A stretch of 32,000 nucleotides of DNA. It comes from Paramicrosporidium saccamoebae KSL3 (taxonomy: Eukaryota > Fungi > Cryptomycota). Location of the stretch: the NCBI GenBank assembly GCA_002794465.1, contig MTSL01000097.1, forward strand, positions 1 through 32,000. The letters run 5' to 3'. Every line of letters begins with the position of its first letter. The stretch's first letter is position 1. Below, piece by piece: positions 3,801-30,861 of this stretch. The notes beneath the pieces were generated by a model. That model worked only from the letters and a program-made list of their open reading frames with translations, ran no database searches and was not told where the DNA came from. The position numbers and the translations under genes were made by a program.

Positions 3801-4973
3801 TTATATTTCGTCAACTTGCATGGTATTATTGAGACGTGTCTCGATGGCAGAAAAGAGAAGATCCAGCACTTTGTGCGGATCACCAAAAGAAGTGTCTGTC
3901 ACTAGTCCACATAGCGATTGTAGCCACCGGAAGGGCACATGGCCCGCCTCCCCCGCTACAATCGATTCGTGGGGGGTGGTGAGTAGTAGAATTGGATCCA
4001 GCGGCAAGGACAACAGAATGGATTCCGATTCTTGTCGGCCCAGGTCGCGTTCTGATAATTCCAATTTTATCACCATCAGCGAGTCTGTGGCATCCGGGTC
4101 GTTGTGATAAAAGTACAACCGTGCTGTACCTTCAGTGAGGGCGAGTTCTGCCAGAATATATGCATGGGCAAATCGTCGATTGACTTTTCGGACATTTGTG
4201 GCAAAACGTCCATGAGTCCGAGCGGGCGCTCCCTCAGCAGGGCTCCTCGTAAGTGAGGAATCGTCATCCAAATGCTCCTCTCCTCCCTCTTCCTCCTCCT
4301 CCTCCCCCGCCTCTAGCTCCTCAAACCGCCACACCTGCAAATCATTCCTCGTCTCCATCACTCCCACTAGCTCTGCCCCCAGTCTATTCAGAGGTGACTC
4401 GCGCTCAACTATCCGTTCCGCCACAAAGAACTTGCCATGTGTGTTAAGGAACGGCTCCGCTGCCTTGATTATATTCTCCAATTGGTCGCGAAGCTTTTCC
4501 AGTTCCTTGCGTTTGAGGACGAGACGGCTACGTGACAGTTCAAGCGAGTCCTGCTTGGATTTAAGATTTTCTGAAAGCCGTTTGCGCGTCTCGAGCTCAA
4601 CCTGGAGACGGTGTAGCGTTAAATCGTGTTCATTGAGGTCCATGGCCGCAGGGTCGTCCTCCATGGAAATGGTCAGGTAGAGGGAATCATGCAATCTAGT
4701 ATCTTCAATGGTAGCCTCTAAATGCCGCTTTTCATAAAGCAGGTTTTGTCTAGACAGTTCGGCGCGGTCAAGGGCATTCTTGGCACTCTGCAGCACCTTT
4801 TTTCTCCCCCTCACCAGCAGCGACATGGCACGGTTTGCCTCGCGCAGCTCCAGAAGTGTCATGTTCAGACGTTTCTTTGCACTCACATCGTCCAAGCCAT
4901 CCACTTTCACCGCTCTGAGCTCGCTCAATGCCACCCTAAAACGCGTTGCAACGGCCTCAGAAGATTCATGCAT
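3801..4973 (-). CDS. THOC5: THO complex subunit 5 (FMIP/THOC5 family), ~390 aa
   Basis: N-terminal coiled coil with LSRQNLLYEKRHLEATIE, matching the THOC5 LxxQNLLYExxHL signature; first ATG at 4973 (the ORF track starts at an upstream TTG). Confidence 0.75.
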   Translation of the reverse strand: MHESSEAVATRFRVALSELRAVKVDGLDDVSAKKRLNMTLLELREANRAMSLLVRGRKKVLQSAKNALDRAELSRQNLLYEKRHLEATIEDTRLHDSLYLTISMEDDPAAMDLNEHDLTLHRLQVELETRKRLSENLKSKQDSLELSRSRLVLKRKELEKLRDQLENIIKAAEPFLNTHGKFFVAERIVERESPLNRLGAELVGVMETRNDLQVWRFEELEAGEEEEEEGGEEHLDDDSSLTRSPAEGAPARTHGRFATNVRKVNRRFAHAYILAELALTEGTARLYFYHNDPDATDSLMVIKLELSERDLGRQESESILLSLPLDPILLLTTPHESIVAGEAGHVPFRWLQSLCGLVTDTSFGDPHKVLDLLFSAIETRLNNTMQVDEI

Positions 4974-9614: not shown

Positions 9615-9790
9615 ACTGCAGAATGAGAGAGAGTATATAACGGATCAATTATAAACAATCTGTTGATAAACAAAAAGTGTGAGATAGGGGCCCAGGATTC
9701 CAACAGTGTCTGTTGATGCTTAAATTAGTTTTACTAAAGCATTTGGCGTTTTTTAGGCCGCCATTCTTAAGAAGGGATAGTGGAGTTGTA

Positions 9791-9824
9791 GGGTCGTGGG
9801 ATTGTGGGATCGTGGGATTGTGGG
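9791..9824 (+). repeat. Tandem octamer (YGTGGGAT) x4, five GGG tracts
   Basis: gggtcgtgggattgtgggatcgtgggattgtggg; loops of 4, 5, 5 and 5 nt. Confidence 0.85.
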
Positions 9825-9892
9825 ATCGCTATCCGGATGTGGATCAAACTATTCAATAACAAGCGGATTCTCTTCAGCAGAGCCCTTATTTA
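9815..9892 (+). repeat. Dispersed bipartite element, copy A
   Basis: GGATTGTGGGATCGCTATCC ... AGCGGATTCTCTTCAGCA ... cccttattt; matches copies B-D. Confidence 0.8.
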
Positions 9893-10085
9893 AATTTTAT
9901 ACAATGGATGTTTGAACTACGACTATAGCCGGGATAATGATCCTGAAATTTAATAGAGATATACCCGCTCATGTATTGCATACACCAGAAACACCTTGGT
10001 CTCTATTACAGCACAAGTTTTACGGGTACAAGAGAATAGACCATATACATTATCACAACTATATATATTCGAGGACCCCACGCAT

Positions 10086-11266
10086 TCATACATTGGGGGA
10101 TTCCGTCTGCTTGGCGGGTGCAACGTATTTCCTTTTCTTGATGGGAGCAAATTTGGGTGGAATCTGCACAATGGACATGGGCGCTACATTTTCGCAATTC
10201 TTTGCATTTGAAAGCGGTTCTAGAGGTTCTTCTGGGACGTCAAAAAGGTCCCCGGATCTGCGGCGCTTTGTGGGAGATGTGCCCAACTTGCCGTGTTTCC
10301 ATTTAACACCACAGGCGTTACATAATGTACTTGGTCCCTCCGGACCTCTCCTCCACATTGGGGTTACGCTGCATTTGCAGTGTGCGCATTGTCGTCCATC
10401 TTCAACTGTCTCAGTAGCGGGCGACGTGGAATGTGCTCTGCGTTCTGCTGTCGTTTTGGAAGTTCTTCTGGTGGTTCGTGCATGCGGCCGGTCAGTAGTC
10501 CTCACAGGACGAGCTAATGTATCACCAGCCACATCGTGGGGGGAGAAGCATGGGAACTGAATCTCACGATATCCAATGTTTGTAGGTTTTGTCAATTTTG
10601 GCAAATATTCAGAAAACAGCGACAATGGATCCCGTGTCCATCGCTGCAGACTGGTCGTTAGCATTTCAGATGGCATCTGGATTGCCATACTCAGAGGATG
10701 CGGAGAGTCAAGCAGTGGAGTGAAGGAGACGAGGAGATTTCCATCAAGCATCTCAACTATGGCATTGGAGGGAAAGACGAGCAGCTCGTCAGTCAGTTTG
10801 AAATATACACATTTTGGCCGGGACATTATCTGTTGGGTTGGTTTCTTATTCTGCGAGACAGTCCCATTCAGTAATTGCACCAAACCCGGATTCCGAGATA
10901 GTAACTCTTTGATGGAATTGGATGCGGAATCCTGAGCTGGGCTGGCCTCGGCGGCAGGGTCCTTTTTGGTTGGGTCCAGGAACATTTGTACCAGCGACAA
11001 AGAGCCTCTTCGAGCGCTAGTGAGCTGCTCCACACTTGGCAGAGTATAAAATGGGACGTTGTGGAAGCGATGGGCGCCGATCATTACAGTGGCGCTGCAT
11101 ACATGCTCCAGCTGCTCTGTCATCACGTCGCTGGCCCTTTCAAAGACTCGGCTTTGCAGAATATCCCGTTCCAAGGCAACACTCCTAACCAACAAAAGCT
11201 CTCCCCGTCTATTGTCACTATTAAAAAGATGGACCAGAATATCTACCGTGCCGTCTTGACTGTCAT
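10086..11266 (-). CDS. GATA zinc-finger transcription factor (C-x2-C-x18-C-x2-C), 380 aa; exons 11266-11247, 11208-10086
   Basis: CAHC-KCSVTPMWRRGPEGPSTL-CNACGVKWK; a 38-nt intron supplies an ATG start (MTVKTARRGELLLVRS...). Confidence 0.85.
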
Positions 11267-11278
11267 CGACCCCGGAGG

Positions 11279-11286
11279 GCCAATCA
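11279..11286. promoter_or_regulatory. GCCAATCA within a 26-nt bidirectional gap (GATA / MRPS9)
   Basis: Exact octamer 6 nt before the MRPS9 ATG and 12 nt from the GATA ATG. Confidence 0.65.
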
Positions 11287-11292
11287 GCGTCA

Positions 11293-12200
11293 ATGATAAG
11301 ACTGGCAGCATTTATTCGGCGCTCCGCTCCGAGCTGGGAATGTCCTCATTTCAGCCGAGTCTTCTCCACTACTCCCGCCGCCGCGAATAATGTAAATGTA
11401 TCGACGGGACGTCCGGAATTCAAAGCATCCGCGTTCACAGGAAAAGCCGACTTTTACGAGGCATACTTTTTCCTCCAAGATGTCCTGCAGCAGGCACAAT
11501 CCGCAGCCCCAGAAACGCACCATGTGCCTATTCGGATCCCATGGCACCCTCTAGATACCATGGCAGATACTATGGGATTTTCACTGACCAAGTTGCAGTA
11601 TCGCAAATTATGCACAATCCTACATAGACTGACCGCGCATACCCACTTGCCATCGCTGCTCCACTTCCTGTCCACCTTTTCGCCTGCAAACCTCACAGAG
11701 CTTCTTGATGCCAAGCCGAGTGAATCACGTGAGATTCTTGCTCGCTATGCGAACCGCGAGCCAAACCTTGGTCATGTTGACGGTAAGGGTCGTGCAGTCT
11801 CAGTTGGACGTCGGAAGACTGCCGAGGCCAAAGTCTATCTCGTTCGGGGCACTGGCGAGTGTTTTGTGAACGGAGTACCGGCGATAGAGTATTTCAAGAG
11901 ACCGCATGAAATGTTCAGGATTGCCGATCCGTTTACGGTAACTGCTTCTTTTGGAAAATACAATGCCTGGTGTCTTGTAAAAGGTGGAGGATTGGGTGGA
12001 CAGGCTGGTGCCATTGTCCATGGAATTGCTAAAGCTATAGTGCTACTGTCGCCCGAGATGAGAAACTCTTTGCAGCCTAGTACTCCCATTAGTCATTGCA
12101 TATTGATTGTTTAGTGTTGTACCGCGATCCAAGGATGGTGGAGAGGAAGAAGCCTGGCCAGCCCAAGGCCAGGAAGAAGTTTACTTGGGTCAAGCGTTAA
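11293..12200 (+). CDS. MRPS9: Mitochondrial ribosomal protein uS9m, 290 aa; exons 11293-12079, 12115-12200
   Basis: GRRKTAEAKV, VKGGGLGGQAGAI; after a 35-nt intron the canonical end RDPRMVERKKPGQPKARKKFTWVKR; Arg-rich presequence. Confidence 0.93.
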
Positions 12201-12214
12201 TAAACAATTCGTCT

Positions 12215-12294
12215 CATAGACCATCACACTGATTCAACAATCACCCCGTCGACCCATAGACTATCACACTGATTCAACAATCACCCCGTCGACT
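12215..12294 (+). repeat. 40-bp direct tandem repeat x2 (plus partial third) between convergent genes
   Basis: catagacYatcacactgattcaacaatcaccccgtcgacY at 12215 and 12255; 2 mismatches. Confidence 0.9.
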
Positions 12295-12330
12295 CATAAA
12301 TCATCATAGGACCAAATCTGTTTATTGTCC

Positions 12331-13958
12331 TTACATTTGGGAGCAATCAGCAAGGATCTCGTAATGTCGGTGGAGGTTTTTATGAATCTCTGCAAAGAGC
12401 GCCGGGATGCCCTTGGTCATCTTGACCACCCAGCCGAGTTCCTGGCGAAGACACTCGTCGGCAAATTCATTCCTCTTGCATTGAAATAGTAAATCTTGCT
12501 GCAACTAACCGATCAATAAATCATTCTCATCATACATGACTGACCCGGCTAAGGGCCTTTTCCAAATCTGGAGTTGGATTGGGTCCGTCTCGGGCACGAA
12601 GCTTCTCTGCATGCGCTTGGGACGAGACAATCTGATCAGAGAGTGCGGCAAAGCGATCAAATTTCATCCTCTTGGTTCGCGTCACCATTTCCTATACTTT
12701 TAACCGCTAAACCCTTTTCGATACGAGACAGCCCACAACTAGTCGGAGGAATAGTTCAACTCTGAGGCCTTGGCGATTTAAATCTTCAGCCTAAAATTCC
12801 ACACAAACCCCCAAATGTACTAGAGCAATGTGTGGAGTGACAAGCCCCTCCAATGCCTTGGGAACTGCAAGGTCCGCATGATCAACGTGCTGGGTGTTCT
12901 CCAAAATCTTTGCCATCCTCTCTGAGATGATGGCAATCTGCTGGTGAGAATTTCCATGAGACTCTGCAAAGGAGGAGAGCGATCTGCGCAGGTCCTCGAC
13001 AGCGTCTTTGAGGTGGTGGGACCACTTCCATGCATCATCGTAAATCATCCAATTCGGCTCACGGATTGGAACAGGTTCATTAGTGCTGGATGTCCTCATG
13101 CAGACAAACTCTTCTTGCCATCCTGGATTGACCCGGTTCCTGATGGTGGAGAAATCTTCCACCGAGAGAAATTCAACCAAAATAGGATCTCTCTGAATTA
13201 CAGGGTGATTTACAACAAGGAATAGAAACTCTTCGAGGCCCCTCCGTCTTGAAGCTACAAATGCATCAGATTGGGTCACTAGATAATCAGCCCAACTAAG
13301 GGGTGGTACGGGCTAGACGCTTTTGCGGAATATTCGGGACGATTCTAAATGGATATTTGTGCACAAGAACCTGCTGGAGCCAGGAAAAATCCTTATATCT
13401 ACGCACTACCTCTCCATTTCGGGTGGATGTGGAGATGCTGTAGTTGCGATGGCGATCGTAGAAAGGACCCGCCATATCTGCTGGGACCACCTCCACTCGA
13501 CAGGTGCTACATTCCACCTCGAGAATGGACCCCATGGAGAGCTGACTGACAGTACGCTTCCACGGATCAAGTGCCGATTCTCCCGAAGTGTAACTCGCAT
13601 TGGCCACAACAATATGATGGTCAGAGGCTTCTTGACTATCAACATTGTCGTCGCCCTCTTCAGCCGTGGCGCGCATCAGCTCTAGTCGTGCCAACAGGTC
13701 ATCCACCTTCAATTCGCCCTCTGTAAAGTTGACCTTGGACAACAACTATCCGTTAGCGCCAAATGCGAATCGTACGACGTCGGACATTTCCGAATCCATC
13801 GAGACCTCGGCAAGCATTTCGGCAAACTGGGAGGACTTTAGCGTCCCCCCGAGGTCGGTCTTTTCCCTAACCACAAAAATGGCCTTTGAATATGCCGTGG
13901 CTACGATTAAAGGCATGATTAATGCCTTACCTAATGTGTCAATGTTGTGCTCCGACAT
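12331..13958 (-). CDS. MVP1: Sorting nexin MVP1/SNX8 (PX-BAR), ~480 aa; 6 introns: 13930-13901, 13775-13746, 13309-13279, 12820-12791, 12724-12692, 12535-12505
   Basis: PX motifs VVRRYKDFSWLQQVLVHKYPFRIVPNIPQK and RRRGLEEFLFLVVNHPVI; helical BAR-like C-terminus; the spliced length of 1443 nt is in frame. Confidence 0.8.
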
Positions 13959-13981
13959 GTACGGAAAAATCAATATAATGT

Positions 13982-14404
13982 TTATCTACAACATACGTGG
14001 GCGGGAAGGATATCTCCGTTTGGATTATCGATGGAATAGGGACAGCCGCAATCCGTGACTGTGCAGGTCGGATTCAAATCACTCATGACCTTGCGGAATC
14101 TAGAGATGATCTGTGTAGGGGGCGAGTTGGGCATGGAGCGAGTGACAGTGCGAATCAGGGTTCGCACTCTAGTCTGCGTCAGAGTAGTCGGCTTAGTGAG
14201 GATGACTGGGATCGGGACTAGATTTGGTGTTGGAGTACATGGCAGACATGCAGTAGTTGTCCTGGGAGTTCCCACTGACGTAGTTCTTGCGCTCGGTGTG
14301 ATAGTTTGGAATACTTGCTGGGTCACCACATGAACACACTGGCTCCATACCAGCGGGATCAGCAACAACAGTAGAAAATGGGTATAATGGCCAACAGATC
14401 TCAT
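13982..14404 (-). CDS. Small secreted Thr/Pro-rich protein with Cys-rich C-terminus, 140 aa
   Basis: Signal peptide MRSVGHYTHFLLLLLIPLVWSQ; T/P-rich middle; CTVTDCGCP...HVCCR end. Confidence 0.7.
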   Translation of the reverse strand: MRSVGHYTHFLLLLLIPLVWSQCVHVVTQQVFQTITPSARTTSVGTPRTTTACLPCTPTPNLVPIPVILTKPTTLTQTRVRTLIRTVTRSMPNSPPTQIISRFRKVMSDLNPTCTVTDCGCPYSIDNPNGDILPAHVCCR

Positions 14405-14550
14405 CGCCGAATGCCCCACCCAAAGTCTCAATCACTAAAGTACCAAGTGGCAACGATACTCGGAATACCCGACCCTATTGGTCCAACATCAAACGGTCCG
14501 CAAGATGAATCTGCTCTAAATATAGTAACATGCTTATTATTGAACAAAAA

Positions 14551-15062
14551 TTAACGTGCACTGTAATATGTAGTGCGAACGATGGATTGGGTGCGGGATT
14601 TTTTGGTGCCGCTGCTGGGGGAGGCGGTGCCAGAGTGATCAGAGGAGGGCGATGCAGACCGAGACTTGTCCTCACTCTGTGCACGCTTCTTAGTTTCGGG
14701 ATTGATGGACTCTGCGGTTGGGGTGGCAACTCCAGTGAAATACGAAGTGTCAAACTATGTCCGTTAGTGATAGTCTGCATACTTACTCCTGGTATGGGAC
14801 CCGCATGTAGTTTGAGGGTCGAGGAAACATGCTGTGGATCAAGCGGCCGGATGGGTTGGCTATCGGCTCCTGAGAGTACGACCTGTAAGAGACTGGCCGA
14901 AGAAACCTTCCATGGCACCTGCTGCTCTGGCGCATTCTGAAGTCGAGTGAACGCCCTCCTCAAGTCTAATTGTTCTAGCCAGTCTACATTGGCAATGCAC
15001 TCTGCAATAAGCTATAATGGAATTAGTGTACCTGGAGCCTCCCTCGGCTCAAAGAATAACAT
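14551..15062 (-). CDS. Mediator subunit MED19/Rox3-like, 149 aa; exons 15062-15032, 15001-14787, 14754-14551
   Basis: Introns of 30 and 32 nt (second has GTAAGT, CTAAC, TAG); ASLLQVV...IRPLD...LKLHAGPIPG resembles MED19 SSLRSLIE...FRLHTGPLP; Ser/Lys-rich tail. Confidence 0.6.
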
Positions 15063-15111
15063 GCGGACTAGCGACCCTTGTGACAGGCGCAAACATCTAT
15101 TATACAAAATT

Positions 15112-15555
15112 CTACAAATAAATACGGTGGAACTGTCGGCTAGTGAGTGCCCTCCGACAAGTGGGACAGTGTTTCGTCTGGCGTACGGCCAGAATGATAC
15201 AAGCCTCGCAGAACAGATGGCCGCAGATAGTGGATGTCGGATGCGACATGTTGTCCAGACAAACGCTGCATTTGATGCAAGTTTTCTTTGCCTCTGGCGT
15301 CGGTAGCTGTTGCACAAAGTCTGTGGAAGGGCGGACTGGAGAGTCGACAGTGAGGTCAACAAGATTGGCGCGCCTTCTTCTTGGGGGCTGCTTTGGAGGC
15401 CTCTTTGTGACCTTTAGAGCCGGTTTCTTGACGGCAAGTACCTGGGGTTCTTCGTCATCAGTAAGGGTCAGTATTTCCTGGAGACTTTCTGTTATTTCTA
15501 TAGAACCGTCTGTAGTGGCTGTATGGGAAAGAGATGGGCGAGGAGTATGAGACAT
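15112..15555 (-). CDS. SUMO-targeted RING E3 ligase (RNF4/Slx8/Rfp-like), 147 aa
   Basis: SIM-like EILTLTDDEE and LVDLTVDSP; C-terminal C3HC4 RING CSVC...CGHLFCEAC...CPTC ending RIYL. Confidence 0.85.
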   Translation of the reverse strand: MSHTPRPSLSHTATTDGSIEITESLQEILTLTDDEEPQVLAVKKPALKVTKRPPKQPPRRRRANLVDLTVDSPVRPSTDFVQQLPTPEAKKTCIKCSVCLDNMSHPTSTICGHLFCEACIILAVRQTKHCPTCRRALTSRQFHRIYL

Positions 15556-15684
15556 TCCCAGTGGCCGGCCTCCTTTTGCGGTCACTCCCTATTGGTTGGC
15601 CATCCTATACGTTCTTGTATGATGTGGTTAATGATTGAATACTGATTTTATGGCCTCTGATCCTTGCGTATTTTCGAATCGATT

Positions 15685-16757
15685 ATGCATACCGTGAGCT
15701 ATTTGGTGCCGCAAGTTTTAAATCACGTCAATCCTAATGTTGACCAATCGTTGATGTCGGCGGAGATTACAAACTTCCGCAGCGTAGTGTCCAAGACTTC
15801 AAAATACCCTCCAGAAGCAGGCCGTTACATTCTATATGCTTGTCTGGGCTGTCCATTTGTGCAATTTATGGATGGCTGTAATATTATAGGCAATGCGTGC
15901 TGTGATGACCCGCGAGTTGAAAGGCTTAACTGAGGCTATTGACATGTGTCTCGTTGACTATCACTACTCTGACAATGGTGGACTCTAATGCGTTTACTTA
16001 TCCCCAGGACTGGCCTTTAGCACGGATGACAAGATTCCTGGCTGTTCACCAGACCCAGTAATGAATGCCAAGTTGCTTCGGGACTTGTACCTCTCAGTCT
16101 GTCCCGCATACAAAGGAATCTTTTCCGTTCCCATGCTCTGGGATCGCAAAACTGGCGAAATTGTGAACAATGAAAGTTTGGACATTATGCAAATGTTCAA
16201 TTCTAATTGGAATGACCTGGCTAAAAATCCGCAGCTGAACTTGTATCCCGATGACGCGACTGCACAGATTGAGAAATGGTTCAGCACCACGCAAGACAAC
16301 TTTTTAAAAGCACCAGGCGATGCCTTCCGTGCCACAACGCAGACTGAATGTGTGCTAAGCGTGATTGACTAATGCGGTTTAGATGAAGAAAAGGCTAATC
16401 AAGTGAAGGATGCTCTTGTAGAGTTGGATGGGATTTTGGGCAAGAGCAAGTACCTGATTGGAGAGCAACTCACTGCTGTTGATATTTCAGCATTCAATTT
16501 TGTTATTAGGTAAAGAGCCTACTAATAGCATTACTAGCTGATGTAGACACGATATCGTCTCCGTATTGCTCTTCCGTATCAATCACATCTTTGTTCGCGA
16601 TTTACCCAACGTGATGCGTTGGATCAAGGACATTCTCAATCTTCCTGGCATCCGCAATGTTGTCTGTGTGGAGCATATTAAGGGAATGACGTTTACCAAA
16701 AAGGCCTACAACCCTAATGGGATCATTCCACTGGGAAATGGGTTTACACTTCCTTAG
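15685..16757 (+). CDS. Xi-class / Ecm4-like glutathione transferase, 313 aa; introns 15859-15889, 15978-16007, 16350-16382, 16510-16546
   Basis: PPEAGRYILY..LGCPFAMR, SVPMLWDRKTGEIVNNESLDIM, NPNGIIPLG; four introns join three ORF fragments into one frame. Confidence 0.88.
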
Positions 16758-16763
16758 TAACAG

Positions 16764-18111
16764 CTAATAAGAAGGATGTTTAATAGTGGTGAAACATAGC
16801 GAAGCGTTAGTTCCACCAAACCCAAAGGAATTGCATAGCGCAGCCCGTAGGTTAGGGGCTAGTTGAGAGTGACCCGTAACTATTGTTACTCCACCCATGT
16901 TACTCCCACCCTGATAGTTCAGTGTTGGGGGGATGAGGGAGTGGTGAAGAGAGAGAATTGTCAGCACAGACTCGACTGCACCTGCCGCGCCAAGTAAATG
17001 CCCAATCGATCCTTTGTTCGCAGTCACTGTCACATTTGAAAAGAGTCTTTGCAGGGCGCAAAGTTCGGCAAGATCTCCAATGGGGGTTGCTGTGGCATGC
17101 GCATTGACATGTTGCACATCTCTGGGAGCGAGTTGTGCCTCTATCAACGCTCGCTTCATGGCCGACTCGGCGCCGGATCCATCGGGGTGGCTGGATGTAA
17201 TATGATGTGCATCGGCACTACAACCGTATCCCACAATCTCGGCATAAATCTTGGCTTTGCGTTGCTGAGCATGTTCAAGCTCCTACAAACAGTCATTATA
17301 CTTTAACATCCCAAACCTCAAGAACCAAGACGCCCGCTCCTTCTCCAATCACAAATCCGTCCCTCTTGCTGTCAAATGGACGACTGCTCTGTTCAGGATT
17401 ATCGTTAAAGTCAGAGCTGAGAGCTTTGGCCTGCGCAAATCCCGCAATCGCAAGAGGATTGATCGCCGCCTCGGTGCCACCTGCAACCATCACAGTGACA
17501 TATCCGTGTTTAATGAGCCTAAATGCATCTCCGACGGCATGCGCACCAGTTGCACAGGCAGTAGATGGTGCCAGTAAGGGGCCACGCAGCCCAAACCGGA
17601 TGGAAACGTGTCCCGCTGCCATATTGGGCAGGATTCGGGGGATAAAATGGGGACTAACCCGACGAGGACCTTTTTGGGCTAGCGTTGTGTATGCTTCTCC
17701 AATGACATCTAATGGCGCCATTCCGGATCCAATGCAAACGCCCTAGGAATCTAAACTCGAAAAATGTCGGTACGCCGTGCTCGCCAAGAGTGGAACTATC
17801 AATCATAGAGTCGGAGACGGCCTCTTTGGCGGCTGCCATTGCATATTGTATATATTTCGGCAGACTTTTGGCACCCTTTTCCTTCAATGTCAGCAAAATT
17901 CACAGTTTACATTGGACAAAAAGTCGGATAGCTCGCAATCATGTATCCACGCAGCAACTCGACTTGCCAAGAGACCATATTCGGGACCCAATTCAGCCGT
18001 AGATCGTATGGCACACTCCCCTTTAACCAGCCGACTCCATGACTTTTCGCAATTACCCCCCAATGGAGACACCAAACCCAATCCGGTGACTACTACTCGC
18101 TTAGTAGCCAT
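16764..18111 (-). CDS. CEM1: Mitochondrial 3-oxoacyl-ACP synthase (FabF-like), 417 aa; introns 17910-17882, 17773-17743, 17316-17283
   Basis: RVVVTGLG, catalytic Cys in TACATG, His in NAHATAT and [27 protein letters not shown]. Confidence 0.9.
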
Positions 18112-18152
18112 AGCGAGGAGCACAAATTCGACCAATAAAACCAGAGGACACT

Positions 18153-18160
18153 TGATTGGC
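18153..18160. promoter_or_regulatory. TGATTGGC (GCCAATCA, reverse) in the CEM1 / secreted-gene divergent gap
   Basis: Exact octamer 41 nt from the CEM1 ATG and 25 nt from ATG 18186. Confidence 0.6.
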
Positions 18161-18185
18161 TGAAAGCGATAAACAGCCCCAAGTG

Positions 18186-19547
18186 ATGATTGTCCACCGC
18201 AACTTCATCGGTCTGTTAATTTTAGTGCTTGTTCCAGTTATTAATGCAGGAGGGGCCCGGAGATCGCTAAAGTCGCCCCTGAAAACGAATAAGAGCATGT
18301 CCATCAATGGCACAACCAAAATAGATAGCGTCCAAATGGTCAAGGTATTGGTTAATTCGGCCCATTCATCGCAGAAGATACTCCAAGAACGACTCGAGAA
18401 AATTGGAGCGGGCGCCAAGACAAACATTGAAGAGTTTGCATCGACCCTGGAATTGCTGGTTCGTGAATCGATTCCGGCATCCCACTTGGCGGAAATTCTC
18501 AAGACATCTCGGTCAAGAGCAATGCTAAAGAGTATGCATGACGGCTTGATAAATATGCTAGCTAGTATCAAGGACATGGGATATTTTTGCGAGGTGATGC
18601 AAGTGATCGGCGACTATTATGGATGGCTATGGATCGAGCACAGCTTGACCGGCGACAAGATCCCCGTAACTTGGAAACCAGCCCAATTGGTGTTTGCGAG
18701 GGTTGCAGCTGCAGTCAATCTGGAAGACATGGAGACTTTGCTAGACATTGCAGACATTATGGGTAAAATACCACCAGGCTCTGTAAAATCCGACATGTAC
18801 GAATCTTACAAGAGGGCATTAGTGATGAATCAAGCCTCTTTAACGCAAGCTGATCATTTTTGGGAGATTATAGGCAAAATGACCGTGAGGAGTCCTTTGA
18901 AAGAGATTATTACTGGAGATTTGAAAAGCAAATTGACTGTTGGCCACATTGAATATGCATTAACACAATCCCCAGAGTTTCTAGGTGATACTCTTGCTCT
19001 CCTTCGGACAAAGGGTGGTTCTGAATTGGAGAAGCAAGTTTTCACGCAACTGGGCCTGTCCTCAAAATTCAAACATACTCCTACCATTCCAAAGCCAGTC
19101 ACTTCGACTACTAAACTGAGTCAGAGAGTGCAGCACGATCTATCAGGGATCCAGAAGCCTCGCGTATTGTATACAAAGATTCGAAATTTGCTAGAAGGTA
19201 TGACGCTCGATCCTGACAAACTCTTGCCTATAATCAAAGAGTCGAAGCTAAATGATTGTACCAAAACAATTAGCATCATGTTCCTTGCTACATTAATTTC
19301 CGATTCAGCCGCTATTAGGGAAAGCTACGACGCAGCCTGCGATTCTTTCCGTCACGGAAAGTGTCCGGTATGGCAGGTAGCTGAGGCACTGGAATATATT
19401 CTCCTAGAAATCCCAATCGTTGAAGAAGAAGAGGATGTATTTGACGCCATTCTTCATTCAAGATTGCTAGCATCTCACAAGTTGCGAAACTATGTCAAAA
19501 CCAACAATAATTCGTGTCCTAATTTATACGAGCTTGTCATAGATTGA
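18186..19547 (+). CDS. Orphan putative secreted helical protein, 453 aa
   Basis: Long intronless ORF; hydrophobic N-terminus FIGLLILVLVPVINA; AATAAA after the stop; no family recognised. Confidence 0.75.
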   Translation: MIVHRNFIGLLILVLVPVINAGGARRSLKSPLKTNKSMSINGTTKIDSVQMVKVLVNSAHSSQKILQERLEKIGAGAKTNIEEFASTLELLVRESIPASHLAEILKTSRSRAMLKSMHDGLINMLASIKDMGYFCEVMQVIGDYYGWLWIEHSLTGDKIPVTWKPAQLVFARVAAAVNLEDMETLLDIADIMGKIPPGSVKSDMYESYKRALVMNQASLTQADHFWEIIGKMTVRSPLKEIITGDLKSKLTVGHIEYALTQSPEFLGDTLALLRTKGGSELEKQVFTQLGLSSKFKHTPTIPKPVTSTTKLSQRVQHDLSGIQKPRVLYTKIRNLLEGMTLDPDKLLPIIKESKLNDCTKTISIMFLATLISDSAAIRESYDAACDSFRHGKCPVWQVAEALEYILLEIPIVEEEEDVFDAILHSRLLASHKLRNYVKTNNNSCPNLYELVID

Positions 19548-19727
19548 TTGTAATCGCAAGATGCCTGTTCAATAAATATTTAGTCCCAGAAAATCAATGT
19601 TGCAAAGTTTGTAACAAGTGTTAGATTCCAAGTGTGAAATGGTTTATAGTAAGGGTCCTGTTGATGAGCGAATTAGATTTGCCAAGGTATATGGCATGCA
19701 GGAAGCCATCCTTAATATAGTAGTAAT

Positions 19728-19800
19728 GGATTATGGTATCGCTATCTGAGTTGGATTCACCACAAGACGAGCGGATACTATTTAGCAAACCTTGTTATTT
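19728..19800 (+). repeat. Dispersed bipartite element, copy B
   Basis: GGATTATGGTATCGCTATCT ... AGCGGATACTATTTAGCAAA; second block 182 nt upstream of ATG 19952. Confidence 0.85.
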
Positions 19801-19829
19801 GTGTCCCGTGGCGAATTTCATGGGTCGTT

Positions 19830-19843
19830 GTTGCTATGGTAAC
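19830..19843. promoter_or_regulatory. RFX X-box-like site GTTGCTATGGTAAC
   Basis: Fits GTHNYY-AT-RRNAAC; a second TATGGTAAC ends at 19862. Confidence 0.45.
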
Positions 19844-19951
19844 GTCCACTGGTTATGGTAACCTTGGGGACAGTATTGACTTGATATGATTGTTGTGAAT
19901 TTAAACCACTGTCACCGCCACTGCCACAGTCACTGCCTCGGCTAGCACGTT

Positions 19952-20872
19952 ATGCAACTCTCCCTCACCACCCTCGCCTTTGCATTCATCAGTATCGTTT
20001 CGGCTCGCGATCTGAGCATTGCCAAGAAAGATAGCAAGCAGGTCACAATCAAATCCAAGGGCACCGGGGAAGTCCTCTGGTTCTCCCTTTCCATCTCCAA
20101 CGGTGTTCCCCTGTTTGAAATCAAAGGAAGCGAAAAGGATGACGAATCTGGAGCCAAGGCAAATGTGCAATTGGCCCTTGAAGACTTTAATGAGCAGGGT
20201 GCGAAGAAATGCCTGAGCTTGGCAGGAACGCAAGGATACTGGTCCGACATTAACGTGGAGCAGGTGGGAGAGGACAGCAAGAAGCCAAACCAGGTCATCC
20301 TAAGATCCACTATGACCCATCAAGATAAGGACATTGCAGGAAACTATTTCGTTCTCGCCCTAGAGGCATCGATTGACAAGGATGGGGATGCTTTTGAAAT
20401 CCGCCAGCAGATTCAAAACTTCCCATACACTGACGGAAAGGGAGTTCTTGACGCTGGACAGCTTATCAGTTCTTCCCACAAGGGCAATGCCAAGAAGGAC
20501 GCCAGCAAGATTACGCTTGCATCCGGAGGGCTTGCTGTTATTGCCGATTCTGCCATCGAGGACGGCACTCCAACCACCATCAAGGCTGTCAGAATGGACG
20601 AGGCCAAGGGTGCCCCACGCAGCGGATTATGCGAACAGAGCAAGCGGGCTCACGTAGAATTTGGTGCCGTACGACCAAAGAATGCAACTTATTCCGAGAG
20701 ACTCGTCTTTTATCCGAATTCGATCAAGATTGTGCAGGAACAGAAACCAGACACCAAGGGCGAGCCCAAGGATCATGTCAAGGGCATGACTTTGAACGGA
20801 GCAGCTCCCTCTGGTGCCATTTCCCTCGGGCTGGGTGCTTCCCTTCTTGCCCTCTTTGGTTTGTTAGCCTAA
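19952..20872 (+). CDS. Surface protein paralog 1 (signal peptide plus GPI-type C-terminus), 306 aa
   Basis: MQLSLTTLAFAFISIVSA|RDL; C-terminal NGAAPSG followed by a hydrophobic end without a cytosolic tail. Confidence 0.85.
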   Translation: MQLSLTTLAFAFISIVSARDLSIAKKDSKQVTIKSKGTGEVLWFSLSISNGVPLFEIKGSEKDDESGAKANVQLALEDFNEQGAKKCLSLAGTQGYWSDINVEQVGEDSKKPNQVILRSTMTHQDKDIAGNYFVLALEASIDKDGDAFEIRQQIQNFPYTDGKGVLDAGQLISSSHKGNAKKDASKITLASGGLAVIADSAIEDGTPTTIKAVRMDEAKGAPRSGLCEQSKRAHVEFGAVRPKNATYSERLVFYPNSIKIVQEQKPDTKGEPKDHVKGMTLNGAAPSGAISLGLGASLLALFGLLA

Positions 20873-21066
20873 GTTGGCTGTAAAAAGATTTGAATCCTAG
20901 ATCTTAGAGCTCAAATATCGAATCCCGCGTCTAGAGTCGAGTAATAAAACGGATTTGTTTGGCCAACGTCTAAAGCGGATTTCATCAATATTAGCCAATC
21001 CAGTTTTGTGTCTATTTATAGACAACTCACTCGGGCGAGTTGGTACATCACAAGTTAACAGCGCCG

Positions 21067-22077
21067 ATGCATCTTTTCTGTCTCCTCCCTCTGCTTGCTT
21101 TTGTGAGTGCACGAAACATTACGATTGTGACAAAGACCAACTCGACGTTCTATGCAGAGAGTGAGACGAAAAAGGACACTATCGGGTACAACTTTGCCAT
21201 TAACCAAAACGTCCTTTCGGTGATGCTTAATGCAACTGAGAGCGCGGAAAATATCGATCCAGTTTCGTACATGATCATCCCGAATCTGCTCCTCGAGTAC
21301 AATAGCACTGAGAATGCAAACTCGACTGACAGCATCTTTGGGTTTCAGGACAAGAATAGCGTTGTTGGTTCTTGGGGCAAGGGACTCTCTGCCACAAAGT
21401 ACAAGTCAAAGGCTCTCAATGGAACCGAGTCGGTTGATGTGTGGCAGGTCAGGGCGGAATGGTCGAATCCAAATGCCAAGAATAAGAAGCCCAAGTTTAA
21501 CGCTCTGATGTACTTTTCATCCGCGGCAACAGAATTCCATGGAAAGCGTCTGTCTCCCAATGCTATCAACATTCGCTACAGCATTCTAAACTATCCGTTC
21601 AAGTACCAGAACTCTACCCTCGGCCTGAATGAGCTGGTGTTGTCCAAGGGAAATATAGCCACCAATCTGTTCTCAAACAGTACCGACGACAATGGCGATG
21701 GCGACTATGGCTCTCTCCGTGTTAACCGAACAGCCTTGGTTGACGGCAAAAAGAAGCATCTGGTCGTCGATCACTATGATGGTTCCAGCATTGACATTGT
21801 TGCAGGGAACTCTACTAATATTGATCTCTCTGAATTTGACAAACAGTCAGTCCTATTCAGTGTGCGGGATGTTTCAGGAGCCAAGAACGTGACCATTGAT
21901 CAGCGTCTCTCCCTAAACATAACTGCCCTGCGTAAGGAAGCAGAGAAGAAAGGAAACAACAAGGAAGAAACTGCATCACCGAACAATTCAAACAAGTCTG
22001 GGGCTCCTTTGACATTTATGGCCTTTGTCATTGCCCTCACTTCTGTGTTGGTGTCCCTCCCTGCGCTGGTGCTCTAA
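21067..22077 (+). CDS. Surface protein paralog 2, N-glycosylation-rich, GPI-type, 336 aa
   Basis: ATG 21067 MHLFCLLPLLAFVSA|RNI; about 14 NxS/T sequons; hydrophobic C-terminus. Confidence 0.88.
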   Translation: MHLFCLLPLLAFVSARNITIVTKTNSTFYAESETKKDTIGYNFAINQNVLSVMLNATESAENIDPVSYMIIPNLLLEYNSTENANSTDSIFGFQDKNSVVGSWGKGLSATKYKSKALNGTESVDVWQVRAEWSNPNAKNKKPKFNALMYFSSAATEFHGKRLSPNAINIRYSILNYPFKYQNSTLGLNELVLSKGNIATNLFSNSTDDNGDGDYGSLRVNRTALVDGKKKHLVVDHYDGSSIDIVAGNSTNIDLSEFDKQSVLFSVRDVSGAKNVTIDQRLSLNITALRKEAEKKGNNKEETASPNNSNKSGAPLTFMAFVIALTSVLVSLPALVL

Positions 22078-22244
22078 GCCAAATGAGATGATGAATAAAA
22101 GGTTCTATTGATGGGCGGGGTATCGCGAGGTGGTATTGTGAGGTACTCTAACCACGGATTAGGGATTCCAACAACGAGCCTTTTAGTGAGCAAGAGTGTA
22201 TCCTTGTTAAAGGCGTCTTTATAAATCTCTACCATCACTACACT

Positions 22245-22316
22245 GGATTGTATGATCGCTATCCGGGTCGGACTCACTAATGACAAGCGGATACTTTTTA
22301 ACAAATCTTTACTAAA
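22245..22316 (+). repeat. Dispersed bipartite element, copy C
   Basis: GGATTGTATGATCGCTATCC ... AGCGGATACTTTTTAACAAA; second block 189 nt upstream of ATG 22475. Confidence 0.85.
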
Positions 22317-22378
22317 GTATGCGACGCCCTTGCGCATTGTTGATTGCTCGGCGACTGTCCAATTTAATCACAGAAGGA

Positions 22379-22427
22379 CCAATCGGACCAATTGAGGGGT
22401 CGCTATGCAACCGACACCTATATATAG
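22379..22427 (+). promoter_or_regulatory. Two CCAAT plus TATA box upstream of paralog 3
   Basis: CCAAT at 22379 and 22388; TATATATAG at 22419-22427, 47 nt before the ATG. Confidence 0.55.
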
Positions 22428-22474
22428 AGCACCGTTAGCTGTCAACAACACAAGCAGAGCCACTCGAGACAATA

Positions 22475-23476
22475 ATGCTTAAGCTCCTGACTTTGCTTCC
22501 TCTCCTCGCATATGCTGCAGCCCGTGATCTCCAAATGGTGACCAACACCAACTCGACCGTCTATGCCGAGAGCAAACACAATGCCGAGACAATCGGCTAC
22601 TACTTTGCACTCACTAACAACGTCCTCTCGGTGATGATCAACGGCACTACAACGGCTCAACTGATCCCCCAAGAGCCAGTTGGCTACATGATCATGCCTC
22701 AGCTTCTCCTCGAATACAACCAGACAATGGATGCCAACAAGACGGAGAGCCGCGCAGGCTTCATGTTTAAGCAGGGCGATATTGCCCACTGGGGGACTGG
22801 CCTTGCTGCCACAAAGTTTGAATCGCGTGGGGCAGACAATTCGACAGTCGATGTGTGGCAGGTGAGCGCCAACTGGACTAATTCGTATGCGCCAGACGGA
22901 AAGAACACGACAGTGCCCAAGTTCCACGCATTAATGTACATTGCCTCTGCGCCAACCAAGTTTGAGGGACACAATCTGACTGACGATGCTATCACTATCC
23001 GGTTCAGCATCCTGGAGTATCCGTTCATGCTGAACAACTCGACACTTGCACTGAACCAGTTGGCTTTGTCAGAGTCTGCAGGAATCACAGCCATTAACGG
23101 AACGTCCGCCGACGGTCCCAGCATCTATGGAGGCAACTTGCGCGTTGACAAGACCGCATTGGTTGATGGAGAGAAGCAGAACATTACGATCATCCACTAC
23201 AACAACGAGGCAATCGACATTGTCGCCGGAAATTCTACTCGCGTAAATGTCACCTCTTGGACTAAGGAGTCGCTCTTGTTGTCATTTGCAAACTCGTACA
23301 ACGCAAAGAATGTCACCTTTGATCAGCGTCTTGGAATCAGCATGTCAAACTGCGACTGCGAGCAGAATGCAAACTCTGAAAACTCGGCCAACCTGATGAC
23401 AAGCAGTACCATGTTGACTGTCTTTGTTGCTGTGCTCGGTGCGTTGGTTTTGGCTTTGCCTGTTCTAGTTTTCTAA
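22475..23476 (+). CDS. Surface protein paralog 3, N-glycosylation-rich, GPI-type, 333 aa
   Basis: [16 protein letters not shown]|RDL; collinear with paralog 2 (TNSTxYAES, GYMIxP.LLLEYN, VDVWQV, KTALVDG, KNVTxDQRL). Confidence 0.88.
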
Positions 23477-23490
23477 GTTTAAACAATAAA

Positions 23491-24614
23491 ATGACCTCTT
23501 CTAGTACGAGTATGGGTAAGCTCGGCCCAATCGAGATGGACCGACGTTATTCCATGGAAGACTTTGAGATTGTGCGCATTGTGGGGAAGGGATTTATGGG
23601 CAAAGTCATGGTAGTGTGCGAAAAGGCCACCAACCAAATCTTTGCGATCAAGTCAATCCACAAGCAAGCCATTCTGGAGCGAAAAGAGGTGAACCATGCC
23701 CGTGCAGAGCGCGATATACTTGCAGAGCTTGTCACCCAACAAAAGAATTGTCAGTATATTCAAAGTCCATTCCTAGTCCGTCTACATGCCGCCTTCCAAG
23801 ACAGAAGCAATCTGTATTATCTTATGGACTTTCATGGCGGTGGTGATGTGGCCGGTCTTCTTGCACAGATGATTCGGCTACCGTCCGACTGGGTACGAAC
23901 ATATGCTGCAGAGATTGTTTCCGGATTGGTCGATCTGCATTCACGGGGCATTGTTTATCGTGATTTAAAGCCTGAAAACATTCTGATTTCCCAGGAAGGA
24001 CACTTGGTGCTTACTGACTTTGGTCTTTGCAAGCTACTACTAGAAGGGACATTAACAAGAACATTTTGCGGCACACCAGAGTATCTAGCACCGGAAGTTG
24101 TGCTCCGAAAACCCTATGGATTAGCTGTGGATTGGTGGAGCTTTGGGGTTTTGCTTTATGAAATGCTCGTAGGAATGGTATTTTGTACATGGTCGGCTTG
24201 ACCGTTTAGACTCCCTTCTGGTCAGACAAGCCAGCTCAAATGTACAGCCGAATCGTAGCAGACAAGGCAATAGAGTTTCCGCCGTCAGTCGACCGGGTGA
24301 CAAAGGACCTGATCACAAATTTGCTGCTTCGGGACCCAGACAGACGTCTCACTGAAAGAAAAGTCATGAATCATCCATACTTTTCCGAAGTGAATTGGCA
24401 AGAACTGGCAAACTTGCACTATCCAGCACCCTTTCGTCCCGGACTAGTACATTTAATGGAGATTCTATAATTCGGCTAGGCCTCCAGATTGGATGTAAAT
24501 GCATTCGATCCCGAATTCACCAATTTGCCCCCCATAATCACGCCCACCGACTATAGCTTCCCTGATAATACATTTGTGCGCAAAGTCTTCCAAGGATTCA
24601 CCTTTCGTCATTAA
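23491..24614 (+). CDS. AGC-family Ser/Thr kinase (SGK/Ypk/S6K-like), 352 aa; introns 24178-24209, 24447-24479
   Basis: [34 protein letters not shown]; C-tail FDPEFT, TP turn motif and hydrophobic motif FQGFTF. Start could be a downstream Met. Confidence 0.92.
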
Positions 24615-24634
24615 GCACCAAACAACTAGTAACA

Positions 24635-24642
24635 GCCAATCA
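24635..24642. promoter_or_regulatory. GCCAATCA 15 nt before the LTA4H ATG
   Basis: Exact octamer in a 43-nt tandem gap. Confidence 0.6.
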
Positions 24643-24657
24643 GAAATAAATTACAGC

Positions 24658-26515
24658 ATGACGCCCACCCTCCGTGACCCTAATTCAGTCTCCAACATCC
24701 TCGCCTTTGTCACCAAACACATCAAGCTCAACTGGAAGGTGAATTTCGAGACATCAACAATTGCAGCTACGGTCGTTCTTACGCTGGCCAGGTTGACTGA
24801 GGAGCAGACGGTAAGACTGGACTGCTCGCATTTGGTGGTGAAAAGGGTTACTGACCTGGACAGTGGACAGGAGTTATCATTCCGTGTCGATCCAAATGCG
24901 ACAAAATTTGGCGGTCTTTTAGCTTTTGATCTTTGCACCAAATGCCCAACATACGATATTGAGTATAGCTCATGTGCTCAGTTGACCTTGTAGGGTTGAG
25001 TATGAAACCACAAAACTGTCTTCTGCTCTGCAATGGTTGACACCGGAGCAGACTGTGGGGAAGAAGCATCCATATTTGTTCAGCCAATGTCAGGCAATAC
25101 ACGCCAGAACAATGTTGCCTTGTCAGGATACTCCAGCCGTGAAATGCACCTATAGTGCCACTGTAACGCTGCCCGCTCCCCTCTCTGCTGTAATGAGCGC
25201 TAATCGTCGCATTGAACGGCCTGCACCGTCCGGCCTGTGCTCATTTGAATTTGAACAGACTCAGCCGATCCCGTCGTATCTGATTGCAATCGGTGCGGGC
25301 CACATTGACTCGCGGGAAATTGGGCCAAGATCCATGGTCTGGTGCGAAGGAGAGGTCCTTGATGCTGCAGCATACGAGTTTGCCGAGACAGAGTCATTTA
25401 TTTCAGTGGCCGAGGATTTGGTGGGCCCATATGTATGGGAGCGATATGATATTCTCCTTTTGCCTCCCAGCTTTCCATATGGAGGAATGGAAAATCCCTG
25501 TCTCACCTTTCTGACACCAAGTTTACTGTGCGGCGACCGATCTTTGGTCGATGTAGTAGCCCACGAAGTTTCCCACAGCTGGACGGGGAATTTGGTTTCT
25601 TGCATGAACTGGGAGCATTTCTGGCTAAATGAAGGATTCACCATGTTTCTAGAGCGCAAAATTCTTGCACGGATCCATGGAGAGGGATGGCGTCAATTTA
25701 ATAGCCACATAGGCTTGGCTGATCTGCGCGAAAGCGTCGCCCAGTTCAACGGAGACGGCCCTGAAACTATGCTGATTCCCGACTTGACTGATACTGATCC
25801 GGACGATGTCTTTTCCTCTGTTCCCTACGAAAAGGGCTACACTTTATTATATGTCTTGGAAGAGTTGGTAGGAGGGCCAGCAGTGTTTGAGCCATTCTTT
25901 AAAGCGCACATTCAAAAATTTGCGGGTCAGTCAATTACCAGTGAGGAATTCAAAGCGTTCCTACTAGGATATTTTGCTCGCGACACTGAGGTCTCTTCCA
26001 AGCTGGCCTCGTTTAATTGGAGTTTATGGTTCAGCGGGCGTGGAATGCCGCCAACCATTCCGTCCTATAGCGAAAAAATGATGACTCCCTGCCGGCTGCT
26101 CGCAGAGACTTGGGTCCAAAATGGCAAATCCAATGACGCAGACCAATTCCCTGCCTTTTCGCCGGCGCAAAAGACAATGTTCCTCGATATTATTCTCCAA
26201 AAGGCCAGCACCATGGACAAAAAGACAGTCCAGCAGCTAGACCGGGAGTATGGGTTGTCAGACTCTAATAATGTCGAAATTCTCCTTAAATGGTATCTGC
26301 TTTGCATCCGTAGCAATACGGAATCAATATTTGAGGGCGCAGCCAAATTTGCCACCCAGCATGGACGCATGAAGTACTGCAGACCGATCTTGAGGGAACT
26401 CTTCAAAAGCGGTGATTGCGGGAGAAAGTTGGCACTAAAGACATTTGACGAATATCGTTCGTTCTATCATCCCATCGCAGCTCAGTTGATTGCCAAAGAT
26501 CTCAATCTCTGTTAA
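24658..26515 (+). CDS. LTA4H: Leukotriene A4 hydrolase-like M1 aminopeptidase, 608 aa; intron 24963-24993
   Basis: [37 protein letters not shown] (HExxH), [18 protein letters not shown]. Confidence 0.95.
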
Positions 26516-26648
26516 GGATAACCGAAAAATGGGCACACTTTTTTAAGTAAAGATGTCTTTGTTGGGCAGGAGAAATCCGGTTGAATGGCTAGAGTAGATT
26601 CGTATTAAAGTATATGGCGCCATGACAGACTGCCACTCTTAGCACGCC

Positions 26649-26715
26649 AGATCGTGAGATAGCTACCAGAATTGCCAATCACCAGCGGATACTGTTCAGC
26701 CGAAACCTTTATTAC
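26649..26715 (+). repeat. Dispersed bipartite element, copy D (most diverged)
   Basis: AGATCGTGAGATAGCTACC ... AGCGGATACTGTTCAGCC ... cctttatta; spacer contains GCCAATCA at 26674. Confidence 0.7.
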
Positions 26716-26814
26716 CAATGGGTAAGCCCTTTTATAGGCTCTCTAGTACGCTGCGTTTCTTGACAATGAGCCAGTTGGTTGTTCTACTATTCCACATTAC
26801 ATCTTAGGACAGGG

Positions 26815-29969: not shown

Positions 29970-30130
29970 ACTCTCGCAAGCCCCGGGAACTGTAGTTCCA
30001 CCTTATGACCTTGGATGTTTAACTATAATAGAAGCTCTTTGCTGGAAACTTTACATCTTATATATATGAGTGAATTCTGCATGAGACCAAAGTGCTGCCA
30101 AAATTTCATATCGGTGGTAGCAAAAAAGAT

Positions 30131-30212
30131 CGACACCGGTGAGATTCGAACTCACGCGCCCAAAGGGCACCAGCTTAGCAGGCTGGCGTGTTAACCACTC
30201 CACCACAGTGTC
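30131..30212 (-). tRNA. tRNA-Ser(GCU), long variable arm
   Basis: Acceptor GACACTG/CGGTGTC, anticodon stem CCAGC/GCTGG with loop CT-GCT-AA, GTTCGAATC T-loop, T6 terminator. Confidence 0.97.
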
Positions 30213-30263
30213 AGCTGGATAGCTGTGGCACAAATAAATATCTAAGTATTATTATGTTGACGA

Positions 30264-30764: not shown

Positions 30765-30789
30765 TAGTGTGCAAATAAACACCAAAAAG

Positions 30790-30861
30790 TTCCGCATCGG
30801 GGAATCGAACCCCGGCCTTCTCGGTGAGAGCGAGAGATCCTAGCCACTAGACCAATGCGGA
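30790..30861 (-). tRNA. tRNA-Glu(CUC)
   Basis: Acceptor TCCGCAT/ATGCGGA, anticodon stem TCTCG/CGAGA with loop CT-CTC-AC, GGTTCGATTCC, T5 terminator. Confidence 0.97.

Follow-up and report, generated by a model that had tools for sequence, protein, structure and literature searches.

The first 32,000 nucleotides of the 51,930-bp contig MTSL01000097.1 of Paramicrosporidium saccamoebae (Rozellomycota; assembly GCA_002794465.1 of 221 scaffolds, accession MTSL00000000), hereafter the window, contain four copies of a real and undescribed repeat. Each copy is a unit of 140–200 nt composed of an upstream module (U) and a downstream element (E), and the units are absent from the orthologous sites examined in related lineages. 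We therefore regard them as a lineage-specific dispersed repeat; the origin that we find most probable, and propose tentatively, is a decaying mobile or copied element. P. saccamoebae is an amoeba parasite that lives inside the nucleus of its host. The annotation and the open reading frames of the window describe ordinary eukaryotic housekeeping genes, tightly packed on both strands. The 7.3-Mb genome, 76% of which is genic, is among the most compact of the fungal lineage (PMC5701793). We found no description of intergenic elements in Paramicrosporidium in the literature.

Four copies of a two-module repeat

We searched for copies in about 40 kb of the 7.3-Mb genome (39,969 bases, comprising the window and scaffold positions 32001–39969). 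The initial annotation had reported four copies of an element on the forward strand, and these were recovered at the same positions: in a leave-one-out analysis with nhmmer, each omitted copy was found with an E-value of 8e-11 (A), 6e-10 (B), 1e-11 (C) or 2e-7 (D), and the next-best matches had E-values of at least 1. The element E holds two conserved blocks. The exact sequence of block 2, AGCGGATWCT, occurs four times, once in each copy; when one mismatch is allowed there are eight matches against 3.05 ± 1.65 expected, a count reached in 0 of 100 shuffles. Searches with nhmmer, cmsearch and the single blocks revealed no fifth copy, whole or partial, in either the window or the additional scaffold sequence. 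Over E, copies B and C are identical at 55 of 72 positions (76%) and the remaining pairs at 60–69%. Pairwise identity by module is 60–77% in E and 51–65% in U, and divergence among the copies over the whole unit amounts to K = 0.55–0.72.

The length of ~70 nt given in the initial annotation did not hold, as it overlooked module U. Local alignment of the 160 nt that flank each copy on either side showed that the upstream flanks are homologous (A–B scored 21 against 9.2 ± 1.3 for shuffled sequences; A–D scored 16, B–D 14 and B–C 13), and that the downstream flanks are unrelated. Module U spans ~65 nt, lies 35–100 nt upstream and reads CCTGTTGATGAGC.AATTAGATT..TA.TAAAGTATATGGCG; in copies A, B and C, GGATTCCAACA stands before it. 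The linkers between the modules differ in length among the copies. Profile searches of the 40 kb found no U without E, and no homology reaching back to the stop codons or to the upstream coding regions was found. Other structural claims fared better. Block 1 and block 2 are indeed complementary (11 pairs in B; 82.5% of cells paired, compared with 35–53% when the partner is slid), the triloop hairpin described for B and C is present in these two copies only, and tandem gene duplication is, as had been argued, unable to account for A and D.

Orthologous gaps in related lineages

Uncultured Paramicrosporidium-like lineages were recovered from metagenomes and SRA assemblies by protein searches with three proteins of the window, namely the helicase, surface-protein paralog 3 and the AMSH-like protein. 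The orthologous site of unit C was compared in three lineages, that of D in two and that of A in one; the comparisons at A and D cover the more distant relatives. The sister lineages (L002–L005 and L018), from JGI 3300042203-5, SRR35145398 and SRR16214429, show a four-fold-site divergence of 0.43–0.49 from P. saccamoebae and of 0.19 from each other. Their gap between paralogs 2 and 3, the site of unit C, matches that of the window in length, and its promoter half is ~85% identical to the window. Unit C itself is missing from this gap: identity over the element is 38%, local alignment scores equal those of shuffled sequences, and neither nhmmer nor cmsearch found anything there. Neutral DNA at the divergence of the sisters is expected to be ~65% identical to the window. 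Since the two sisters share 78% identity over this gap, neutral DNA at this distance stays alignable, and unit C is therefore truly missing from the sister clade.

The same was found at greater distances. A more distant lineage from sample DRR438482 (L006, L011) has no copy in the gaps orthologous to C or D. A still more distant lineage (L012, L016) shares the gene order of the window and has no copy in the gaps orthologous to A and D. There, the gap between the helicase and GATA-factor genes (site A) measures 73 nt, compared with 471 nt in the window, and the gap between the leukotriene-A4-hydrolase-like (LTA4H) and AMSH-like genes (site D) measures ~70 nt, once a mis-called last exon is corrected, compared with 299 nt. 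A covariance-model search of ~70 kb of sequence from the relatives gave no match. In public collections we used a strict pattern that matches copies A–C. It gave one match in the metagenomes, including the samples of the closest relative, and this lies by chance in a bacterial type I restriction enzyme gene; viral contigs gave none, and 596 Gb of prokaryotic genomes one chance match. The comparison suggests DNA that the P. saccamoebae lineage alone acquired, or at any rate kept, and we infer that the absence reflects a gain in this lineage and not loss elsewhere. The absence of the units from the orthologous gaps of relatives argues against an old conserved function and favours a mobile or duplicative origin.

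Two candidate likenesses in the relatives were rejected. Block-2-like and tail-like strings in L002, L006 and L011 were considered as diverged orthologs, and local alignment gave z < 2 for every pair of unit and gap. The likeness of unit D to a repeated motif of the DRR438482 relative was likewise not significant (z < 2), and that motif is absent from the window. The motif, GAGTAG..GTGATTACTGCACCC.TTTA with a small hairpin, occurs in three of the six gaps sampled in that relative, including the gap orthologous to site D (L006 24–68; L011 2653–2730, in tandem; L011 ~4277–4318, reverse strand).

Several further features of the relatives' gaps were recorded. The contigs of L012 (21.7 kb) and L016 (13.2 kb), from samples JGI 3300036987, 3300037657 and 3300037044, SRR12926096 and SRR11844784, are gene-for-gene colinear with the window and have much shorter intergenic gaps; the 3′ end of the AMSH gene in L016 was probably mis-called owing to a missed intron. 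Two independent JGI contigs of the closest relative (L009, ending at 2001, and L010, ending at 1127) both stop 5–24 nt past the AMSH stop codon, that is, at the start of the site D gap, which may reflect an assembly-breaking repeat or a polymorphic region. L018 carries at ~150–205 a 52-nt insertion relative to its sister L002, with an internal direct repeat TCAACATCAT(A/G)GCA present twice, an instance of rapid indel turnover in gaps.

Placement of the units behind protein-coding genes

The initial annotation had placed the copies in intergenic gaps. The placement is more specific than this description. All four units lie downstream of the stop codon of a forward-strand gene and share the orientation of that gene, and in four of four copies a poly(A)-signal-like hexamer stands between the stop codon and the unit. 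The distance from the stop codon to the start of U is 95 (A), 110 (B), 101 (C) and 62 nt (D), and the units lie 20–70 nt past the hexamers. The genes upstream of the four units are mutually unrelated. Judging from this arrangement, the units probably lie just beyond the cleavage sites, in the termination zone, and are not likely to be inside 3′ untranslated regions. The coordinates of the units, their parts and their neighbours are listed in the table.

Table. Positions of the repeat units, their parts and surrounding features in the window
Feature	Position	Strand	Description
Unit A	9695–9892	+	198 nt
GGATTCCAACA of unit A	9695–9705		
U of unit A	9709–9770		
Tandem duplication in unit A	9796–9827		16-nt GTGGGATTGTGGGATC, twice
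E, copy A	9815–9892	+	
Hexamers before unit A	9650; 9665		TATAAA; GATAAA
Neighbours of unit A	stop 9614; stop 10086		Convergent DDX56/DBP9-like helicase gene; GATA-factor gene
Unit B	19622–19800	+	179 nt
AGATTCCAAG of unit B	19622		
U of unit B	19657–19715		
E, copy B	19728–19800	+	
Hexamer before unit B	19571–19576		AATAAA
Neighbours of unit B	stop 19547; ATG 19952		Unknown 453-aa gene; surface-protein paralog 1
Unit C	22163–22317	+	155 nt
GGATTCCAACA of unit C	22163–22173		
U of unit C	~22178–22222		Diverged
E, copy C	22245–22317	+	
Hexamer before unit C	22094–22099		AATAAA, kept in relative L002
Neighbours of unit C	stop 22077; ATG 22475		Surface-protein paralog 2; surface-protein paralog 3
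Unit D	26577–26717	+	141 nt
U of unit D	26577–26641		
E, copy D	26649–26717	+	Most diverged copy, spacer 12 nt shorter
Hexamer before unit D	26546–26551		AGTAAA
Neighbours of unit D	stop 26515; stop 26815		Convergent leukotriene-A4-hydrolase-like gene; AMSH/STAM-binding-protein-like gene
Promoter of paralog 3	22340–22474	+	CCAAT, TATATATAG, leader; outside the repeat; internal control
Tandem 40-nt unit	12209–12288		Two copies, 93% identical
AGC-type protein kinase frame	23491–24993		236-aa open reading frame 23491–24201, probable intron, resumes 24574–24993
tRNA genes Ser(GCT) and Glu(CTC)	30130–30213; 30789–30861	−	

The promoter of paralog 3, which adjoins unit C, corresponds to positions 985–1154 of L002 and 300–434 of L018 and contains CCAATCGG, GCTATGCAAC and TATATATAGAGC and the leader GTCAACAACACAAGCAGAGCCA. 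By its ~85% conservation at a synonymous divergence of 0.45, it is strongly constrained. Elsewhere in the window, the convergent gap between the ribosomal S9 and PX/RING genes holds the tandem 40-nt unit listed in the table and measures 216 nt, compared with 61 nt in the syntenic L012, a further case of extra DNA in a convergent gap. The AGC-type protein kinase is represented in the deposited annotation by a 111-aa fragment only, and L004 and L006 have a gene called there. Its true start is probably at ~23536, which would place it ~59 nt after the stop codon of paralog 3, compared with 310 and 557 nt in the relatives.

Explanations for the repeat

The initial annotation had offered three readings, namely a small non-coding RNA (ncRNA), a mobile element and a DNA-level site. 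The absence in relatives favours the mobile or duplicative one, and the evidence brought forward for an RNA fails when tested. Under the origin that we tentatively prefer, the four units would be decaying remnants of a mobile element, small and non-autonomous, or of another copy-and-paste mechanism, and they may have spread by transposition or ectopic copying. They would have landed, or been tolerated, in the termination zone just past poly(A) signals, where insertions would do the least harm in a 76%-genic genome. The subterminal CTGTTGA...TCAGCAG and internal ATCGCT...AGCGGAT repeats may have been used as DNA or RNA hairpins, and the units would presumably have no conserved host function. 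Marks of decay are visible: copy A has a 6-nt duplication besides its 16-nt tandem duplication, copy D has a 12-nt deletion, and the linkers are variable. Also in favour are the resemblance to miniature inverted-repeat transposable elements, or MITEs, in size, non-coding nature, inverted repeats and gene proximity, and the lack of a thermodynamic signal of structured RNA in the whole units.

The comparison with known mobile elements is informative on both sides. MITEs are listed, for example, for Nosema microsporidia (PMC4405373). Like MITEs, whose length is 100–800 bp, the units are short, non-coding and lineage-specific, contain inverted repeats capable of forming hairpins and stand beside genes, and their copies have diverged. 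Unlike MITEs, they lack target-site duplications, their inverted repeat is short, imperfect and not strictly terminal, they have no known autonomous partner, and all copies have the same orientation. Short interspersed nuclear elements (SINEs) are similar in size and also lack coding capacity, and the orientation and position of the units are compatible with read-through transcription; however, the units lack the A and B boxes of RNA polymerase III (Pol III), resemble neither tRNAs nor any Rfam family, and have neither an A-rich or simple-repeat tail nor a target-site duplication. A tRNA-derived or SINE origin was accordingly tried and rejected, as neither strand has an A or B box and there is no consistent similarity to the two tRNA genes of the window.

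Several observations weigh against a mobile origin. The check for target-site duplications suggested in the initial annotation revealed none in four boundary combinations with shifts of up to 8 nt; sporadic 4–5-mers occur, at inconsistent offsets. The inverted repeats, of 7–10 bp, are short, subterminal and imperfect; CTGTTGA...TCAGCAG measures 6–9 bp and is 60–80% matched per copy, and homology among the units extends past it by 14–35 nt on the left and ~10 nt on the right. No transposase or autonomous partner was seen, the copies are known from only 40 kb of 7.3 Mb, and the repeats annotated in the P. saccamoebae genome amount to just 0.53%, mostly simple repeats (PMC5701793). Four copies in one orientation, within 17 kb and at similar offsets after stop codons, are unlike random insertion, with the reservation that the shared orientation alone has a chance probability of p = 0.125. 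Conservation is patchy, E being better conserved than U, and the indels avoid the blocks, which hints at constraint; in addition, the arms of a long-range helix, described below, co-vary. Finally, the whole-unit divergence (K) exceeds the divergence of the species from its sister clade. A recent insertion, after the split, thus needs either source copies that were already diverged or fast intergenic evolution, and diverged source copies elsewhere in the genome are a prediction of the mobile-element reading. Taken together, the uniform orientation, the fixed position after poly(A) signals, the fact that E is better conserved than U, and the covarying helix keep functional readings alive.

One such reading, which we consider unlikely, is that the units are a family of small ncRNA genes, each giving a forward-strand RNA of ~130–175 nt. 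Pairing of CUGUUGA in U with UCAGCAG in the E tail would close the ends of this RNA around the ATCGCU/AGCGGAU helix, and the RNA would be transcribed by read-through or from TATA-like GTATATGG/TATAAA boxes 24–40 nt upstream of E. The evidence originally offered for an RNA, the helix between blocks 1 and 2, does not carry this: its covariation equals the shuffle mean. Of the six core pairs, five never vary and one is broken in D, and changes in the outer pairs are uncompensated. Folding is no better than that of dinucleotide shuffles for the 70-nt element (z = −1.3 to +0.9, both strands), and the folding energies of the whole units equal those of shuffled sequences (z = −0.5 to +0.2). A different helix emerged when RNAalifold was applied to the extended alignment, in which CUGUUGA(UG) at the start of U pairs with the tail of E. 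It comprises nine pairs, with 89% of cells paired and three pairs showing compensatory changes. Its covariation was reached by 3 of 500 pair shuffles, and slid partners pair in 33–54% of cells compared with 90.6%. The consensus minimum free energy (MFE) is −5.5 kcal/mol, compared with −1.8 ± 1.6 for column-shuffled alignments, 10 of 300 of which were as low. Because this helix was chosen and tested on the same four sequences, the resulting p of ~0.01–0.03 is optimistic. The predicted helix is the sole positive hint of an RNA or a DNA hairpin, and its support is marginal (p ~0.03).

Further points in favour of an RNA are that variable positions in the E tail, with the consensus CTNTTYARC, pair with variable positions in U, that the G–U pairs are compatible with the forward strand only, and that the orientation of the unit is that of the upstream gene in four of four copies. 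Against it, the helix is part of the MFE fold of A and D only. Boxes of the C/D and H/ACA types are lacking in the units, as are the A and B boxes of Pol III, and the T5–T6 runs in units A and C would halt Pol III. The sister lineages have no ortholog, and for a functional RNA this is unusual. Rfam 15 at the gathering score matched only two tRNAs in the whole window, and at E ≤ 10 each of the four gaps gave nothing on the units, with noise only (sR3, E = 2.3, outside a unit); the claim that the element belongs to no known family was thus upheld as far as Rfam is concerned. The two tRNA genes, listed in the table, are the sole Rfam and ARAGORN matches in the window. Small nucleolar RNAs (snoRNAs) of the C/D and H/ACA types, with genes that stand in the gaps between genes of compact fungal genomes, are among the closest points of comparison: they share a length of 70–200 nt, a helix joining the 5′ and 3′ ends, and variable regions between conserved blocks, and in copy B a UGAUGA stands beside the 5′ arm. 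They differ in that the C box is exact in B only (A has UGAUGC, D UGAAUG and C AGUGAG) and no copy has a CUGA D box at the 3′ arm. Nor is there an H or ACA box: no ACA is conserved at a distance of 3 nt from a 3′ end, and folding equals that of shuffled sequence. The units have no Rfam snoRNA match and no ortholog in relatives. It would, in short, have to be a new class of helix-closed RNAs of 130–175 nt, made behind protein-coding genes, that arose and spread within the P. saccamoebae lineage, and we hold this to be a doubtful proposition.

A cis-acting DNA module is another improbable candidate. Here the units would be clusters of sites for a sequence-specific protein; candidates for these sites are the near-palindrome GAT(A/C)GCTATC, GCGGATAC and the repeated GGAT(T/C). 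The module would serve as an insulator or as a directional terminator or roadblock of RNA polymerase II (Pol II), and in B and C it might double as an upstream activating sequence. Indeed, block 1 is a near-perfect palindrome of 10 bp, with one mismatch to its own reverse complement in A, C and D. GGAT-type motifs recur at approximately one helical turn and are amplified fourfold in A, and the spacing between blocks 1 and 2 is flexible (16–28 nt) with the blocks themselves free of indels. The position is also terminator-like, being 20–70 nt past poly(A)-like hexamers and between convergent genes or before the next promoter. Yeast-type Pol II termination or roadblock elements include Reb1-type sites, which lie downstream of poly(A) signals. 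The units resemble these in being past a poly(A) signal, between convergent or tandem genes, directional and palindrome-like, and differ in that the 140–200 nt shared far exceed a binding site, are not known to match any consensus and are dispensable in the sister species. The comparison with relatives likewise stands against a DNA module: sister lineages do without it at the same gene pairs, the gaps at A and D measure ~70 nt in the most distant relative sampled, and no copy was found at orthologous sites in the lineages examined, where the adjoining promoter is conserved. Moreover, none of the approximately nine reverse-strand genes in the window has a unit, the motif is no commoner singly elsewhere than expected by chance, and we can name no protein that would bind it. 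The GATA-like cores of the units would also be at odds with the fungal consensus HGATAR.

We also considered a short coding exon, a micro-ORF or a relic of one, and find it very improbable. In a forward frame of the form D-[CYR]-x-I-A-[IT]-R ... [KEQ]-R-I-L-F-[SN]-[RK], copies A, C and D have D-C-G-I-A-I-R...K-R-I-L-F-S-R, and three successive codons differ at their third positions. In block 2 the sites that vary are the third positions of ATT/ATA, CTC/CTA/CTT/CTG and TTC/TTT, CGG and AGA both encode arginine, and the spacer indels are 6 and 12 nt long. Of the six frames, this one also shows the largest proportion of synonymous differences over block 2 (16 of 47 codon pairs that differ, 34%), and it has no stop codon. 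However, variable columns are distributed evenly among the codon positions (block 2, 6/7/7; block 1, 4/3/3), copy B is interrupted by an in-frame TGA and by a frameshift of +1, and the copies have no start codon, stop codon or splice site in common and no intact open reading frame. Neither the rest of the 40 kb nor the relatives contain the peptide motif, and such matches as exist to the 5′ coding part of the adjacent surface-protein genes are marginal and lack colinearity. An identity as pseudogene fragments of the surface-protein family was rejected, as it rested on two marginal, non-colinear matches confined to copy B.

At present, the finding is of modest, annotation-level standing and introduces no new principle. 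A diverged family of 140–200 bp, probably missed by standard repeat finders, would show that compact genomes still gain and keep non-coding DNA, and that intergenic length turns over fast between related lineages, as at the gap of 471 versus 73 nt. If there are many copies, the repeat would be a useful marker with which to follow insertion dynamics and type strains among uncultured Rozellomycota. Should the RNA or the terminator reading be true, the units would represent this lineage's own answer to the problem of transcribing closely packed genes.

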